Below are positions 10,535-44,013 of a stretch of 64,000 nt of DNA, one piece after another. Source of the stretch: Lepidodermella squamata (Eukaryota; Animalia; Gastrotricha); the NCBI GenBank assembly GCA_047495785.1, contig JBLDXI010000055.1, positions 1,054,001 to 1,118,000 of the forward strand, given 5' to 3'. Under the pieces are notes generated by a model that saw only the letters and a list, made by a program, of their open reading frames with translations, made no database searches and was not told the DNA's origin. The position numbers and the translations under genes were made by a program. Each line of letters starts with the position of its first letter. Within the stretch, counting starts at the first letter, position 1.

Positions 10535-11150
10535 GCGGCGTTTATGCCACCATCAACCCATGTGCATCAACCATCAACTCTGAATCTGCCACTTTGTTGC
10601 GAATACTATGGTGTTGATATATTTTAGTTTTCTAGTTTGGTTGCGTTGAGGCGCTAAAAGAGACTCAACGATTTAGAAATTCCTTGCATATGAATAAGTA
10701 TACTGCCCTCTGCCCTGCTCTGATTCACCATTCACCTAGTTCCCCGTTACCCAGAATTCCATCCGCTTTTACTTGGATGATGGATGAGGGGGCCGACAAT
10801 TTTTGCTATAGTATGTCTAAGGTCAGAAAATGCGATTCGGCTGTGCATTTTGTGGTAAATACTTAGTCAGCAGTGAGTCGTGAAGTCTTTTGTATCCATA
10901 AGGTTCCAGGTTCCAATCTGGCATTGTTTCAAATTCTAGGGTTCGATAGGAAAGGTCCGATTGTTTGGTTTATCTTTATTAGTTTATGACTAAGCTGAAT
11001 TCGAGCCTCAGGGAATATGGCAGGGTTTGCAGTTTGTTGTTGCTAGCAGAACCTGAGGCCCGTGGATGCCAATTCATGCCTGGAAAACTTTATTATTCCT
11101 TGAGAAAATAAACTTCATTCTTTCTTGTAGCTTTTTGATTGGATGCACAG

Positions 11151-11378
11151 ATGCCTTTAAGGCCAGGCCTTTTTCAGCGCGCTGCCGCCTATATTCGATA
11201 CGGCTACGAAACCCGACCTGACTTAGTTTTGGTCTGGGGATTACTTGTTCCTGCAAGCGCGACAGTTCTTGCTTACCGAACTCTCCAGCACATCCGCCAT
11301 CCTGAGAACTATCCTCGCTACTTGTGGCATCCAATCGTTGTTCGAGCCGAAGACGTCACGCCACCGAATCGCAAATAA
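11151..11378 (+). CDS. Small single-TM protein, probable complex I accessory subunit NDUFA3-like
   Basis: 75 aa. The pattern ..RPDLVLVWG-TM-..PRY..IVVRAED resembles invertebrate NDUFA3-type proteins (PD.V-TM-RY...VV.R.D). Confidence 0.55.
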   Translation: MPLRPGLFQRAAAYIRYGYETRPDLVLVWGLLVPASATVLAYRTLQHIRHPENYPRYLWHPIVVRAEDVTPPNRK

Positions 11379-11423
11379 AATCTGTTGATTAATCTAAACC
11401 AAATTGTTATTATTAGAGTAGTA

Positions 11424-12807
11424 ATGTCAACAATAGCGATTTTGATTCGTTCTGGCTCTTTGTCACGTAGCGTTGCCTCTCGATACCTCCGTCCTCATGT
11501 AATTTCATACAATGGTCTTCGTTTTAATTCATCCTCGAAAGCTCCAGCTGCTGCATCAGGGCAGTATATCCCGGAACCTCCCACTCCAGGAGCACCGCAA
11601 ATTAGTTCACCGGTTTGTGTTTCTGCGCTTTGCGAATTTTTTGACAATATCATGCTTTTTCAGATTGAGTTATTCCAACCCGATCAGTTGAATGCGCTGG
11701 GCGAGCCTACGATTAGCAGCTTGGGTCTTGGAAGCTATTACACCCCTTGGGGCCTTTTCCAAAATGTTTTCGAGGCAATGCACGTTAATCTTCACCTGCC
11801 ATGGCTCGCATGCATCTCAGTTACAGCGATGGTCGTTCGTCTTGCAATTTTCCCATTTCTGATCAAGCAGCAACAGCGCAATGCGGAAATGGCTCGGTTA
11901 ATGCCTATTATGCAGGAAATTCAGGAAAAACTAAGCGAGATTAAGGCAACACGTAATATCACCAAAATGTCCACGGCGTTCCAACCCCATCACATTGCTG
12001 CTGTCGAGGTTTGATTTTACATTTAACGCCATGTCTATATTCAATTCGATGATCGTCTGCAGGAATATAAACGTGTCGGTGGAGTTTTTCGCAACTTGAA
12101 AGTTCCCCTGATTCAACTGCCTTTTGTTGTGACAATTTTCGTCAGTCTCCGTCAAATGGCCAATTTACCGGTTCCGTCTTTCAGAGATGCGGGTCTTTTT
12201 TGGTTCCCTGACTTGACGATGGCCGATCCTTATTACATTCTACCTGTCGCAACCTCCGTCCTATTCTGGCTGTCACTTGAATTCGGCTCGGAAGGCATGG
12301 CCTCGTCGGCTCTACCGGGGAATCGTGGGAAACTGCTGACACGAATCATCCCTCTCGCAATGTTACCATTTATGGTGATGTTTCCATCGGCTCTTTGTTG
12401 GTATTGGGCGTCTTCCAGTGCTCTTGGTCTTGCACAGGTAATTTAACAGAAAAATCCTGCTCGAAACAATTTTAATCTAATTTTATTCCGGCTAGCTTGG
12501 TGTAATGCGGATTCCTGGCGTTCGTGCTAAGTTTGGTTTGCCCGACAAAATTGACGCATCTGTGGCGAAAACAGCTGCAAAGGCTAATAATCTAGTTGCG
12601 GTGAAAGCTCCAGCCTCCAGTGATTCATGGTCTATCTCAAGCTGGTGGCAAGGCGTGAAAGAAAAACGCGACCGCGACCGAGCTCTTCGCGAAAGCGAAA
12701 ATATGGGTCGGTCAGACTACGAGAATTTCGTCAAAGCCGGCCAAGGCAAGATTCCGCGCACCTTCGAATACAACCCCAAGGACAAAAACCGACGAGTTTC
12801 CCAATAA
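11424..12807 (+). CDS. OXA1L: Mitochondrial inner-membrane insertase OXA1L; introns ~11613-11663, 12009-12062, 12438-12495
   Basis: Arg/Ser-rich presequence; LGLGSYYTPWG, LHLPW..I, LRQMANLPVPS..GLFWFPDLT.ADPYYILP, and a C-terminal TFEYNP. Confidence 0.92.
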
Positions 12808-41035: not shown

Positions 41036-41220
41036 CGATCCCATCCATCAAACAACTCTCAGGCTTTCCACATAATTCCAGTCGATTTTAATCACTGACT
41101 CGTTCTGATCTTTTGCACTAAGAATGCACTCTCCGATCTTTCGTTTCAGTTTTCAGCTCATTTTTGTTACGAAGAAATGTGTTTTCATTAATTCTTTCAT
41201 TTATTCTAGATACAATTTAA

Positions 41221-42081
41221 ATGAGTTCTATAGAAGAGCTGACCAAGTTAGATTTGTATCAACTCCTTGGGGTAACACCAGATGCTTCGGACAAGGATAT
41301 CACTAGAGCTTATAGGAAAGCCGCATTGAAATGCCATCCGGACAAAAACCCCGATAAAAAAGCTCACGAAGAATTCCAGCGTCTTGGAAAAATTTTGGAT
41401 CTTCTTTGCGATCCAGCGAAGAGAACGGCTTATGATCAAACATGGAAGGCGAAAAAAGCGGCAGCTGAAAGAGTAAGGCAGTTAGATTCTAAGCGCCGCA
41501 AACTTCGGGATGATTTGGAGGAAAGGGAGAGAGCTGCGGCCGATAAACTTAATGGAAAAACTTCGTCGGGAACGCTTTCGGAGAAAGAGCGAATCGAACT
41601 TCTGCGGGAAGAAAGTCGTAGGTTATTGGAAGCTGAAAGGATGGCGAGTTTGAACAAGCACATCGCACTCAATCGTCATGTCAAGGCAAAATGGAATGCT
41701 AGTCATGCAGAGCACGCCAGCTACAGCGAGGCCGAGCTGTCCAAAATGTTCAGTAAATATGGTCATATTGTGAGAATAAAGTTGGTCGGTCGGTCGTCAG
41801 CAATCATCGAGTTCGCGTCTAGAGACTCTGCATTGCATAGCATGCGCGAGTTGGGTCATGTTGAGAACCCTTTGGATCTAGATCTCCTGGACGACATCGA
41901 CGATAATTCGGAAATTTCTGAGCCAGCGGAGAAAAAAGACCCGATTTCAACTCAAAAGCGACCCCTGCAACATACTACTACCCCTGCCCCAACACAGTCT
42001 TTTTCGGATTTCGAGGCTGAAACTCTGCAGCGGTTAATGGCAGCTGCTGCTGCGAAAAAGAAAGCAGATGCGGCTACGTGA
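41221..42081 (+). CDS. DNAJC17: DnaJ homolog subfamily C member 17 (J domain plus RRM), intronless
   Basis: KAALKCHPDKNPD J domain, LDSKRRKLRDDLEERER, and an RRM with VKAKW...FSKYG...SAIIEF. Confidence 0.93.
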   Translation: MSSIEELTKLDLYQLLGVTPDASDKDITRAYRKAALKCHPDKNPDKKAHEEFQRLGKILDLLCDPAKRTAYDQTWKAKKAAAERVRQLDSKRRKLRDDLEERERAAADKLNGKTSSGTLSEKERIELLREESRRLLEAERMASLNKHIALNRHVKAKWNASHAEHASYSEAELSKMFSKYGHIVRIKLVGRSSAIIEFASRDSALHSMRELGHVENPLDLDLLDDIDDNSEISEPAEKKDPISTQKRPLQHTTTPAPTQSFSDFEAETLQRLMAAAAAKKKADAAT

Positions 42082-42226
42082 TAATCAAGTCAGGAAATAT
42101 TTGTTTGTTTTTTTACAACTTTGGTTTTCCACTGAATCTACCGGTTTTCTTTCAATAAATTGTTCGCTCTCCTAATTCTAGTTTTGCTCCAAAAAACCTA
42201 TAACTCGTGTGTAGAACAAGTCCAAA

Positions 42227-42700
42227 ATGAGGAGTAACTGTAATTTGATTTTTTCGGAAGGTTTTATCTTTTAATTGCTCAATCGTGGCTTCAGCTGCTT
42301 TCCGGAAGGAAGTTTTGGCCGCCTACGCGCGTCTGAACCGAGTTTCTCGGCAGGTTTTTGGTGAAGACAAAGAAACTTACAATTGTATGGCTTCATTCTT
42401 GATTATTTTAACTTGTCCAAATGGTGATATTCTAGTTTTCAGGAAGAAGCTCGGACAGGATTTCAGAGCTAACAAGGAGAAGAAATTGACGGAAAAGGAA
42501 GCTAACGACGTGAGTAAATTTTTTTTCCATCTTTCCATAATTTCAACTGAAATTATTTTTAGCTATTGAAAGCCGCTCGGGAAATTGAGACGATCATCAA
42601 GGCATATATTATTCCAGTGAAAGCTACCGAGCGCGGGACGTATAAACTGAACATTAAGCCGGATCATCTTCGAGGCGAAAATCCTCCACTATCGGATTGA
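42227..42700 (+). CDS. LYRM7: Complex III assembly factor LYRM7 (LYR motif); exons 42227-42233/42239, 42295-42384, 42436-42509, 42563-42700
   Basis: Spliced product EVLAAYARLNRVSRQVFGED...DFRANKE...LLKAAREIETIIKAYIIP..T..GTYKLNIKPDHL.ENPP matches the LYRM7/Mzm1 pattern; ~102-104 aa; introns 51-61 nt. Confidence 0.85.
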
Positions 42701-42705
42701 TTGCA

Positions 42706-43407
42706 ATGCTAACTTCTATTCAAAGTCGACTGGGCGAGTTCCAGTTTGTCCTGGCTAGTGCGTCACCTCGCCGCTTGAAACTTCTCGAAGAGTTAGCTGG
42801 CTTTAAAGACAATATAATTGTGATACCCTCAAAATTCAGCGAAAATTTGGATCAGAAATCATTTGCAAACAGTGCAGACTATGCAATCGCAACTTCGCTA
42901 GAAAAGGCACTGGAAGTTGCGGGAAGATCGTCACCCGAGTTATCTGTTCGTCACATCATTATTTCGGCCGATACGGTTGTTGAGTGCGATGGCAAGATTT
43001 TGGAAAAACCGGCAAATTCAGCAGAGTCTCACGCTATGATAAAAATGTTGAGCGGCCGAAGCCATTTCGTCCACACCGGTGTTACCCTCGGATTTTTCGA
43101 CCCCTCATTTCTAGAAAATTACGACGGAAAGGGAGCGGTGAGAGCCGTTGAATTACGGGGACAGAACAACCGGCTGCTGCATACGCTTACTTTCAGCGTT
43201 ACGACACGGGTTGAATTTTGTCAGCTCAGTGACGATATAATTTCTGGCTATGTCGCAACTGGCGAGGGATTAGACAAAGCTGGCAGCTACGGCATTCAGG
43301 GCGTTGGCAGCACGCTGATAGATTCTATTCAAGGCGATTTTTATAACGTTGTCGGCTTACCTTTGACTCGTTTGTGCCAAGAGATTTATCGCACGCTTCG
43401 AAAATAA
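42706..43407 (+). CDS. Maf-family nucleotide pyrophosphatase (ASMTL N-terminal-like dTTP/UTP pyrophosphatase), intronless
   Basis: VLASASPRR..LL, ISADTVV.DGKILEKP, LSGRSHFVHTGV, DKAGSYGIQG and GDFYNVVGLP. Confidence 0.93.
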   Translation: MLTSIQSRLGEFQFVLASASPRRLKLLEELAGFKDNIIVIPSKFSENLDQKSFANSADYAIATSLEKALEVAGRSSPELSVRHIIISADTVVECDGKILEKPANSAESHAMIKMLSGRSHFVHTGVTLGFFDPSFLENYDGKGAVRAVELRGQNNRLLHTLTFSVTTRVEFCQLSDDIISGYVATGEGLDKAGSYGIQGVGSTLIDSIQGDFYNVVGLPLTRLCQEIYRTLRK

Positions 43408-44013
43408 AATAAATTGTTCATTCGAGTTTTCTTCCGTTTTATTTCCGTTTCATCTTTCCGCAGTAAAACAAAGATAAGGGCACTTGGTAGCCAATTTTAT
43501 ATAAGGAATTTAAAATTTAGTAGGTTACTTCATTTTTTTTCATGTTATAATGAAGCTATATTAACAACAGTTTTGTCAGATCATTCGTCTTCCTTGCGAT
43601 TGATAGTGAAAAAAGTAATTCCATTTGCTCTGAGCTAGGCAATAACAACGGTTATATTATAGCGTTATAGTGCATTTAGCGTAGATTTTGCTGTGCTTTC
43701 GGACTACAATCAGGTTCATGCGAGAAACTGAAAAGATTTCATCAACATATTATAAGCTAACGCGTTCATGGTACGATTTGGCTTGACAGCTCAGCTTTTA
43801 CCTTTATAATGTTTTAGAATTTAGTGTCAAAATAATTATCGAGCAACCATTTGCTTTGTCATGTCTTTACAAAAGTTGCAATAAAAATTATGTACAGCCT
43901 CTCAAGGATGACTGAGTCGGTCGATAAAAAAATTAGAAAAATCTTTGATTTTCATAGCAAAGCATGTTCGCTGGCAAAATTACAAGGACTGAAAACAGGA
44001 TATGTATTAAATG

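Follow-up and report, generated by a model that had tools for sequence, protein, structure and literature searches.

A conserved LYR–Maf gene pair in the gastrotrich Lepidodermella squamata as a candidate leaky-scanning bicistron

Background

How might two proteins be made from two open reading frames (ORFs) that abut so closely on one strand of an animal genome that five nucleotides separate the stop codon of the first from the start codon of the second? The question is raised by a locus of Lepidodermella squamata within a stretch of 64,000 nt (contig JBLDXI010000055.1, forward strand; hereafter the window), where an ORF for a small LYR-type protein is followed by one for a Maf-type pyrophosphatase. 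An earlier note on this DNA had proposed that both are translated from one bicistronic mRNA, and had named as an alternative the addition of a spliced leader at the acceptor of the last LYR intron.

Arrangements of this kind are known from several groups. The mammalian MIEF1 mRNA carries the ORF of a small mitochondrial LYR-type protein ahead of a main ORF unrelated to it; that upstream ORF starts at an AUG and lies within a conventional 5′ UTR, and both its LYR subfamily and its downstream gene differ from those considered here. Green algae possess bicistronic loci translated by leaky scanning, with a weak start for ORF1 and ATG depletion before ORF2 (Duenas et al. 2024, PMC11291117), and the cistrons of green-algal bicistronic loci encode LYR-motif proteins more often than expected (Gallaher et al. 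2021, PMC7896298). For Drosophila, a count of at least 168 dicistronic loci is cited (Crosby et al. 2015, PMC4528330, as cited in PMC7896298).

Results

The genes of the locus lie on the forward strand in the order centrin, DnaJC17-like, LYR and Maf. The centrin gene has its poly(A) site behind 41191, and 18 nt past that site RNA run X1 reveals a splice acceptor (ttctag/ATACAAT, 41209/41210), 11 nt 5′ of the DnaJC17 ATG, to which a 17-nt non-genomic leader is joined in the RNA (loose end before 41208). This acceptor likely marks the 5′ end of the transcription-unit context. Searches for a leader RNA gene found the 17 nt neither in the window nor in the literature searched, and a metagenome scan returned chance 17-mer matches only. 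The DnaJC17-like gene (41221–42081), directly upstream of LYR, encodes a J domain and an RRM (Pfam DnaJ, 5e-22; RRM_1, 9e-7) and also matches named DNAJC17 proteins, the closest of which come from molluscs and annelids at 35–45% identity; the host is not an insect.

At the other end of the locus, the Maf ORF (42706–43407, forward strand, TAA at 43405–43407) encodes a 233-residue nucleoside triphosphate pyrophosphatase of the Maf/ASMTL type, which matches Pfam Maf (PF02545) over profile positions 1–184 of 187 at 8e-50 and 169.5 bits, the curated cut-off being 27 bits, and the Maf domain of human ASMTL (2p5x) at 2e-42. In the alignment with 2p5x, the blocks SASPRR, ADT, LEKP and DKAG-YGIQ are identical or near-identical; we take these to be the active-site blocks that hold the catalytic residues of published Maf work. 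Two overlapping AATAAA hexamers (43403 and 43408, together 43403–43413) lie at the Maf stop codon, and loose ends of 23 A in run X1 place a poly(A) addition site at 43533/43534 on the forward strand; in run X3, one contig terminates at 43426.

The two ORFs meet as the earlier note had described: the LYR stop codon TGA (42698–42700) is followed by the spacer TTGCA (42701–42705) and by the Maf ATG at 42706 in another frame, a reading that held on rechecking. Assembly error at the junction was ruled out, because an independent DNA run covers 42556–43784 as a single contig. The spacer is too short for a promoter and contains neither AG nor AATAAA and hence, in this species, no acceptor or poly(A) signal. 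The only AATAAA hexamers are those at the Maf stop and one at 42154 in the DnaJC17 3′ UTR, before the LYR ORF. With none between 42154 and 43403, the poly(A) signal and AG that mark a spliced-leader operon joint are both lacking between the ORFs.

The LYR cistron, all on the forward strand, has coding exons of 100 nt (42285–42384, counted from a GTG; the exon 2 proposed earlier begins at 42295), 74 nt (42436–42509, present in an RNA contig) and 138 nt (42563–42700). They are separated by intron 2 (42385–42435, 51 nt, holding two ATGs) and intron 3 (42510–42562, 53 nt), both of which are confirmed by an RNA contig as the GT..AG joints 42384>42436 and 42509>42563. The coordinates of the spliced LYR-type ORF proposed earlier were also right: joined from 42227–42239, 42295–42384, 42436–42509 and 42563–42700, it gives 104 residues; its first exon is taken up below.

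Read from the GTG, the LYR product has 103 residues, a mass of 11.9 kDa and a basic pI of 9.7. Members of the LYR-motif superfamily (Pfam clan Complex1_LYR-like) are small and basic, and carry an L-Y-R-like tripeptide near the N terminus, basic residues and, further on, a conserved phenylalanine (Angerer 2015, PMC4381221). The product is likewise small, basic and LYR-like, with the motif L-A-A-Y-A-R-L-N-R invariant in the two species compared below and D-F-R some 28 residues further on, the tripeptide itself being degenerate (A-Y-A-R). Pfam and PDB searches with LYR exon fragments, a word-based homologue search with a read-through LYR fragment and an Atlas search with LYR exon 4 all returned no matches. 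By language-model features a 71-residue LYR fragment lies nearest to LYR clusters, yet with a similarity of just 0.80–0.81, which makes this a weak lead. The upstream product may resemble human LYRM7, of the LYRM7/Mzm1 subfamily of complex III Rieske chaperones, and LYRM7, the name used in the earlier note, is a tentative label.

Both adjacency and AUG depletion, which the earlier note had suggested looking for in related genomes, are kept in a distant relative, represented by metagenome contigs of one lineage with two haplotypes, in which the order centrin, DnaJC17, LYR, Maf recurs. Protein identity to this relative is 60% for DnaJC17, 50% for Maf and 65% for LYR (74% in its last exon). LYR exon lengths (100/74/138 nt) and phases are identical, intron lengths differ by just 1–3 nt, the stop-to-ATG spacer is again 5 nt (ATACA), and a pair of AATAAA hexamers again lies at the Maf stop. 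Nucleotide identity in LYR by codon position is 0.63/0.80/0.36, a second population differs at four sites, all of them synonymous, and the relative's two haplotypes show no differences within LYR. Judged by these comparisons, the LYR ORF is under clear coding constraint, and both ORFs are real conserved coding genes. Beyond this one distant lineage, no further relative with the pair was found in the sequence collections searched: LYR was absent near Maf at the Bicyclus and Sarcoptes Maf loci and at four more loci from metagenome or other assemblies, one of them GC-rich, and another DnaJC17 contig contained neither LYR nor Maf. The best further Maf matches were to a choanoflagellate and a sponge.

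Where LYR translation begins is the point on which the earlier model found no support. That model started LYR at an ATG in a 13-nt exon (42227–42239) followed by a 55-nt GT..AG intron 1 (42240–42294), both on the forward strand. The sole RNA contig there (42108–42384) runs unspliced through the putative intron, and depth arithmetic leaves no alternative contig. A 1-nt indel polymorphism at 42249, within the putative intron, shifts the frame of ATG 42227. In the relative the exon has no counterpart: no GT/AG combination yields an in-frame ATG, and none is present in frame or spliceable. From the DnaJC17 stop to the Maf ATG, the mature RNA contains just one other ATG, that at 42227. In the unspliced form it opens an out-of-frame upstream ORF (uORF) of 15 codons that stops at TAA 42272–42274; were intron 1 retained in mature RNA, this uORF would compete with a GUG start. 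An in-frame GTG at 42285–42287 (forward strand), with A at −3 and G at +4, is a better candidate for a weak LYR start. GTG GCT TCA and these context bases are kept in both species (aatcGTGg and aacgGTGg), and the protein similarity between them begins exactly at this codon, so that the conserved GTG is likely to be the start; GUG initiation is proposed from two sequences only. A GUG start would be weak by nature, whereas the alternative AUG at 42227, with A at −3, is not weak.

Three other ideas about the start were rejected. A leader-supplied AUG is disfavored on reasoning, since the leader, as far as its 3′ end is known, holds no ATG and would bring an in-frame stop at an acceptor at 42294/42295; a conserved uORF ending just 5′ of the GTG has its frame shifted by indels in the relative's second haplotype and in run X2; and an initiation-boosting hairpin 3′ of the GTG, judged on two sequences, reaches a mere −6.9 kcal/mol and is unconvincing.

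As had been noticed earlier, neither the spliced upstream coding sequence after its start nor the spacer contains an ATG in any frame, and the Maf ATG is therefore the first after 42227 in the mature RNA. Dinucleotide shuffles of the spliced LYR coding sequence contain a mean of 2.8 ATGs (P of none, 0.03; codon shuffles, 0.048). In the 317-nt mature LYR stretch, ATG is the sole trinucleotide absent in both species, where composition predicts 5.5–5.7 and none is observed in either. For this stretch, dinucleotide shuffling gives P = 0.010 in this species and 0.0035 in the relative, and codon resampling gives probabilities of no ATG of 0.14 and 0.01, respectively. The depletion in this species alone is therefore modest, with P between 0.01 and 0.14 depending on the null. 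The LYR introns do contain ATGs, unlike the mature stretch, and in both species LYR lacks ATG throughout its first 174 nt. A second ATG-free pair occurs within the window, at 11154–11423.

The RNA itself comes from a single run, X1, whose contigs cannot show single molecules. They stop at 42693 and resume at 42749, leaving a 55-nt hole (42694–42748) over the LYR/Maf junction. True RNA ends at these positions were rejected as an explanation, as they would delete the LYR stop and Maf start codons; the hole may instead stem from polymorphism, graph pruning or a filter. Neither a poly(A) tail nor a foreign leader was found at the junction in the RNA contigs, even though these do show loose ends of this kind at 41191, 41208 and 43533. 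Further upstream, contigs 41991–42137 and 42108–42384 overlap by k−1, and coverage is thus unbroken from the DnaJC17 3′ UTR into LYR. This, together with the lack of a DnaJC17 poly(A) end, means that the transcript may exceed two cistrons.

Discussion

On balance, we think it slightly more likely than not that the LYR and Maf genes constitute a conserved unit of two cistrons, which share one mature mRNA and are translated by leaky scanning. The ORFs, their 5-nt abutment and the conserved ATG-free state all stand as evidence for the bicistron that the earlier note proposed, and they fit leaky scanning; because the hole in RNA coverage falls exactly on the junction, we infer the single mRNA across it, and likewise which codon starts LYR and that ribosomes reach Maf by scanning. 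In this model, the 103-codon LYR ORF would have a weak start, most probably the conserved GUG at 42285, which in this species might be replaced or supplemented by AUG 42227 through an optional 55-nt intron. Mature LYR has stayed free of AUG in all frames, and a 40S subunit bypassing the start of LYR would consequently meet the Maf AUG at 42706 first. The unit belongs to an operon-like series of genes (centrin, DnaJC17, LYR, Maf) in an animal with leader trans-splicing, and the 5′ end of the unit is probably a leader acceptor located after DnaJC17 and before the GUG, perhaps 42260/42261.

The most serious competitor, which we nevertheless regard as rather unlikely, is operon-type processing, in which the leader is joined inside the end of LYR to give a separate Maf mRNA with a short AUG-free leader alongside an overlapping LYR mRNA. 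The host does trans-splice, as the 17-nt leader at 41209/41210 demonstrates, and in run X3, which has low depth, Maf is covered whereas LYR is missing. Candidate acceptors would be AG 42673–42674 or the intron-3 acceptor 42562/42563 here. In the relative, the TAG that stops LYR could itself serve, since its context, TAG/ATACAATG, closely resembles the acceptor 41209/41210 that RNA supports; judging from this resemblance, trans-splicing there could yield a separate Maf mRNA. In L. squamata, however, the spacer lacks an AG, the nearest one (42673–42674) has a poor pyrimidine tract, and no leader loose end occurs at 42563 or near the junction. The spliced leader suggested earlier for 42562/42563 thus finds no support, the contig being cis-spliced at that position, and would at most be a minor form. 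Absent leader ends are weak evidence in themselves, because short dead-end leader branches can drop out of assembled contigs. Two further points weigh against operon-type processing: it requires ATG depletion only 3′ of the acceptor, whereas the first 174 nt are depleted as well in both species, and an mRNA for LYR would have to be polyadenylated from a signal within Maf, where there is no AATAAA.

Improbable, in our view, is a single bicistronic mRNA from which Maf is made mainly by termination–reinitiation, with ribosomes that have passed the TGA restarting at the AUG 5 nt on. The equal stop-to-start distance in two distant species speaks for it, but the unchanged spacer is no strong signal of constraint, because it is flanked by coding sequence and even the introns have shifted by only 1–3 nt. 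After an ORF of 103 codons, reinitiation is as a rule inefficient unless an element tethers the ribosome, and a TGGGA-type motif is absent in both species, so that the short stop–start distance is the only feature of a TURBS present. Nor does reinitiation need an ATG-free upstream ORF, the strongest signal at the locus.

To a long DnaJC17–LYR–Maf RNA, either mature and with internal ribosome entry or a mere precursor whose mature forms went unsampled, we assign a similarly small probability. Run X1 contigs are unbroken from DnaJC17 into LYR at similar depths (116, 113, 85 and 132), no poly(A) loose end occurs near the AATAAA at 42154, and in the relative the 92 nt from the DnaJC17 stop to the GTG contain no AATAAA. 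The DnaJC17 ORF holds 18 ATGs, however, so scanning from its 5′ end cannot reach LYR or Maf; with internal entry the strict ATG depletion of LYR would be purposeless, and the contigs cannot reveal single molecules. That the LYR ORF does not encode a protein and instead serves Maf as a long regulatory leader or uORF is highly improbable: it lacks an in-frame AUG unless spliced and its fragments have no Pfam match, but the codon-position conservation, a protein identity above that of Maf, the identical exon phases and lengths, the exclusively synonymous population differences and a basic 11.9-kDa product with LYR-like features all speak against it.

The leaky-scanning bicistron can be set beside several known systems. 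With the green-algal loci the LYR–Maf pair shares a small upstream ORF, the under-representation of ATG before ORF2, the conservation of both ORFs and the keeping of pairs between species. It differs in that the algal ORF1 starts at a weak-context AUG, whereas LYR may start at GUG; in the distance between the ORFs, 5 nt as against green-algal medians of ~200–260 nt (PMC7896298, PMC11291117); and in its host, an animal that also trans-splices a leader and in which the single mRNA is deduced. The Drosophila dicistronic genes resemble the proposed LYR–Maf unit in being mature animal mRNAs with two unrelated conserved ORFs, the first often small, but the arthropod Maf loci examined (Bicyclus and Sarcoptes) have no adjoining LYR. 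Nematode and tunicate spliced-leader operons likewise consist of same-strand housekeeping clusters with very short gaps, and the centrin/DnaJC17 joint behaves like one, with its poly(A) site at 41191, its acceptor at 41209/41210 and the leader in the RNA. Between LYR and Maf, by contrast, there is no intercistronic region and neither a poly(A) signal nor an acceptor, so that in this species a spliced leader cannot resolve the joint in that way. Termination–reinitiation of the calicivirus type shares the placement of stop and restart codons within a few bases, but here there is no 18S-complementary TGGGA motif, and LYR is ATG-depleted, which reinitiation does not need.

Conclusions

If one mRNA gives both proteins, the LYR–Maf pair would be a clean, conserved animal case of leaky-scanning bicistrony with an unusually sharp signature, in which ATG is the sole missing trinucleotide in two species and the first start is probably not an AUG. 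It would then also demonstrate that two kinds of polycistrony coexist in compact spliced-leader genomes. As the mechanism is already known, its value would lie in the wider range and in a testable GUG start rather than in a new principle. The pair also bears on annotation, because the LYR gene is uncalled in the relative's contigs, and it adds to a recurring pattern in which LYR-type mitochondrial assembly factors travel on shared messengers, as in green algae and the upstream ORF of mammalian MIEF1. More tentatively, and with some doubt, we suggest that such units may form a second layer of polycistrony atop spliced-leader operons, a genome-wide strategy in which the leakiness of a GUG-started, AUG-free LYR cistron would set the LYR:Maf ratio. 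If true, genome-wide leaky bicistrony would be a phenomenon not yet described in animals outside insects.

Results

The earlier note had proposed that two forward-strand ORFs, a small upstream one called LYRM7 (here LYR) and a downstream Maf pyrophosphatase, share a true bicistronic mRNA. Reading 41700-43900 and listing its ORFs reproduced the layout: LYR as built there (42227-42239, 42295-42384, 42436-42509 and 42563-42700; 104 aa) ends with TGA at 42698-42700, and a 5-nt spacer, TTGCA, leads to ATG 42706 of the Maf ORF (42706-43407; 233 aa) in a different frame. The immediate upstream neighbour of LYR is a DnaJC17-like gene (41221-42081, forward strand), which is preceded by a centrin gene. 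Abutment through misassembly is ruled out by a single contig over 42556-43784 in X2, a DNA run from a closely related population.

The Maf protein has a complete Maf domain (Pfam, 8e-50) and, among solved structures, comes closest to human ASMTL's Maf domain (2p5x, 2e-42); the SASPRR, ADT, LEKP and DKAG-YGIQ blocks are kept in the alignment to 2p5x. The LYR product is basic (11.9 kDa, pI 9.7) and carries an N-terminal L-A-A-Y-A-R-L-N-R with D-F-R further downstream, which fits the LYR motif as described (PMC4381221). Pfam and PDB searches with LYR exon fragments gave no match, and in a language-model search a 71-aa fragment fell nearest LYR clusters with a score of only 0.80-0.81. Classification as a LYR-type protein is thus reasonably grounded, with LYRM7 a putative assignment.

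Maf-based searches returned a best match of about 43% identity, with no LYR beside Maf in the other loci examined. A DnaJC17 query, in turn, identified a single protein of 60% identity among ENA metagenome assemblies, from a distant relative present as two haplotypes (L008/L009 and L010/L011). The order there is centrin, DnaJC17, an uncalled gap of ~515 nt and Maf, and tblastn with the spliced LYR protein recovered all LYR exons in the gap. Gene order is thus shared although the proteins are only 50-65% identical. Both species, counting from a shared GTG, have LYR exons of 100, 74 and 138 nt, with introns of 51/53 nt in the window vs 50/56 nt in the relative, where five nucleotides, ATACA, again separate the LYR stop from the Maf ATG. 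Identity is 74% for LYR exon 4, 65% for the whole LYR protein and 50% for Maf; nucleotide identity in LYR by codon position is 0.63/0.80/0.36. Within LYR, X2 shows four differences from the window, every one synonymous, and the two haplotypes of the relative are identical there. The codon-position pattern, the protein identity and the synonymous-only X2 differences indicate that LYR is a constrained protein-coding gene, better conserved than Maf. No additional relative lineage emerged when Maf was the query in an exhaustive profile-free search. The gene finder missed LYR altogether on the relative's contigs (L008 8326-11272; also L009, L010 and L011). Maf carries a ~20-residue insertion at about residues 130-165 (43093-43200) compared with human ASMTL and bacterial Maf; that of the relative has one at the matching place, different in sequence.

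X1, an RNA run, yielded spliced contigs with poly(A) tails. One of 482 nt spans 42108-42384, 42436-42509 and 42563-42693 and, because it joins 42384 to 42436 and 42509 to 42563, introns 2 and 3 of LYR are real GT..AG introns. It overlaps DnaJC17 3' UTR contigs by k-1 bases, and RNA coverage is therefore unbroken from that UTR into LYR (41991-42384); no DnaJC17 poly(A) loose end was recovered in X1 contigs, including near the AATAAA at 42154. Further downstream, 42749-43533 is represented by another contig, and loose ends of 23 A follow both 43533 and 43534. Between the two, at 42694-42748, exactly the LYR/Maf junction, depth is zero with no loose letters, flanked by depths of 85 and 132. We treat this hole as technical and uninformative, proving nothing by itself, because it deletes the LYR stop and the Maf start, a loss that no intact-ORF model predicts. 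In X1 contigs the edges of the hole bear neither poly(A) nor a foreign leader; both kinds of end were recovered elsewhere. As to the single mRNA of the earlier note, introns 2 and 3 and the poly(A) site at 43533 are present in RNA, but contigs stop at 42693 and restart at 42749, and continuity across the junction is what we infer. Maf has two apparent 3' ends, since a contig of a further run, X3, ends at 43426, just past the AATAAA pair at the stop; no canonical signal precedes 43533/43534, and the centrin site at 41191 likewise has no AATAAA.

The X1 RNA also shows that the organism trans-splices a leader, because a 17-nt non-genomic sequence ending ...GTGTCTA(AG) is joined to the acceptor ttctag/ATACAAT at 41209/41210, 11 nt before the DnaJC17 ATG (41221). 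With the centrin poly(A) tail behind 41191, the centrin/DnaJC17 joint (41191-41221) looks like a trans-spliced operon joint with a gap of 18 nt.

The start of LYR had been placed at ATG 42227, upstream of a first intron (42240-42294). This assignment is not supported: the X1 contig retains the intron, depth arithmetic leaves no alternative contig there, and the exon has no counterpart in the relative. There, the only ATG between the DnaJC17 stop and Maf lies 6 nt past that stop, out of frame, and no GT/AG pair brings it in frame with LYR; in the second haplotype, two indels alter the frame and end of its uORF. One X2 haplotype has four SNPs and lacks one nucleotide of the T-run at 42249 (42189-42249), a deletion that sets ATG 42227 in frame with LYR, with no splicing and 19 added residues, and in the other, as in the window, this ATG opens a 15-codon uORF. 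Because indels shift them in both lineages, the upstream-ATG frames are not constrained, which fits a location within an intron, or within an outron that trans-splicing takes away.

Protein similarity to the relative begins exactly at GTG 42285; the two species share GTG GCT TCA there, as well as A at -3 and G at +4. GUG 42285 is plausibly the ancestral, weak LYR start; AUG 42227, with its 55-nt intron, may serve as an alternative in this species only, or be irrelevant. Both species have, 22-24 nt ahead of the GTG, an AG that follows a T-run (42259-42260; L008 10130-10131) and could be a leader acceptor. No leader was seen at 42260 in the X1 contig, but contig assembly readily prunes short dead-end branches. 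A hairpin downstream of the GTG is weak and was judged unconvincing.

The claim that LYR is ATG-free in any frame was confirmed: the spliced window CDS has zero ATG after its start (dinucleotide shuffles, mean 2.8, P(0)=0.03; codon shuffles, P(0)=0.048), a depletion that is by itself suggestive but short of compelling. Adjacency and depletion both recur in the relative. Over 317 nt of mature sequence, from the GTG to the base preceding the Maf ATG, ATG is the sole trinucleotide missing from both species and, in the relative, the only absentee among 64, with 5.5-5.7 expected from base composition. Dinucleotide shuffles gave P=0.010 and 0.0035 (window and relative), and resampling synonymous codons with own-species usage gave P(0)=0.14 and 0.01; the two species' values are near-independent because third positions are saturated. 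The LYR introns do carry ATGs, two per species. The first 174 nt of LYR are as ATG-free as the last exon in both species, and this whole-ORF cleanliness speaks for scanning through the entire LYR rather than for entry confined to its last part. Elsewhere in the window (11139-11426), an NDUFA3-like small ORF (ATG 11151, stop 11376-11378) lies 45 nt ahead of an OXA1L-like ATG at 11424, with 270 nt between the two starts lacking ATG, the same signature.

Discussion

The observation in the earlier note holds, and conservation makes the case for it much stronger. On balance we lean towards LYR-Maf being a leaky-scanning bicistron, in which a weak or non-AUG LYR start would let ribosomes scan past and the AUG-free LYR would let them reach the Maf AUG in good context (gcaATGc in the window, acaATGt in the relative). 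Experiments in green algae have shown that the combination of a first start that is weak or not AUG, an upstream cistron free of AUG and a second AUG in good context gives leaky-scanning bicistrons (PMC11291117; PMC7896298). LYR-motif proteins are notably frequent among green-algal bicistronic cistrons (PMC7896298).

Termination-reinitiation could contribute to Maf translation, in keeping with the conserved 5-nt stop-to-start gap, but there is no TGGGA-type tether and the ATG depletion would be left unexplained. DnaJC17, LYR and Maf may also be joined in a tricistronic precursor RNA, alternative processing also being possible: besides the unbroken X1 coverage without a DnaJC17 poly(A) end, no more than 92 nt, free of AATAAA, lie between the DnaJC17 stop and the LYR GTG of the relative (L008 10063-10153). 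Scanning from the DnaJC17 5' end is excluded by the 18 ATGs of that gene. Less probably, Maf could have a leader-spliced mRNA of its own. The relative's LYR stop reads TAG/ATACAATG, resembling the proven acceptor at 41209/41210; in the window, the spacer lacks AG, and the tract of the closest one, at 42673-42674, is poor.

Mature mRNAs with two cistrons have been described in Drosophila, green algae, fungi and mammals. We found no literature that describes a bicistron of LYRM7 or of LYR with Maf, nor any bicistronic mature mRNA in animals that trans-splice a leader. LYR-Maf would add to this known class a case in which the first cistron has a plausible GUG start.
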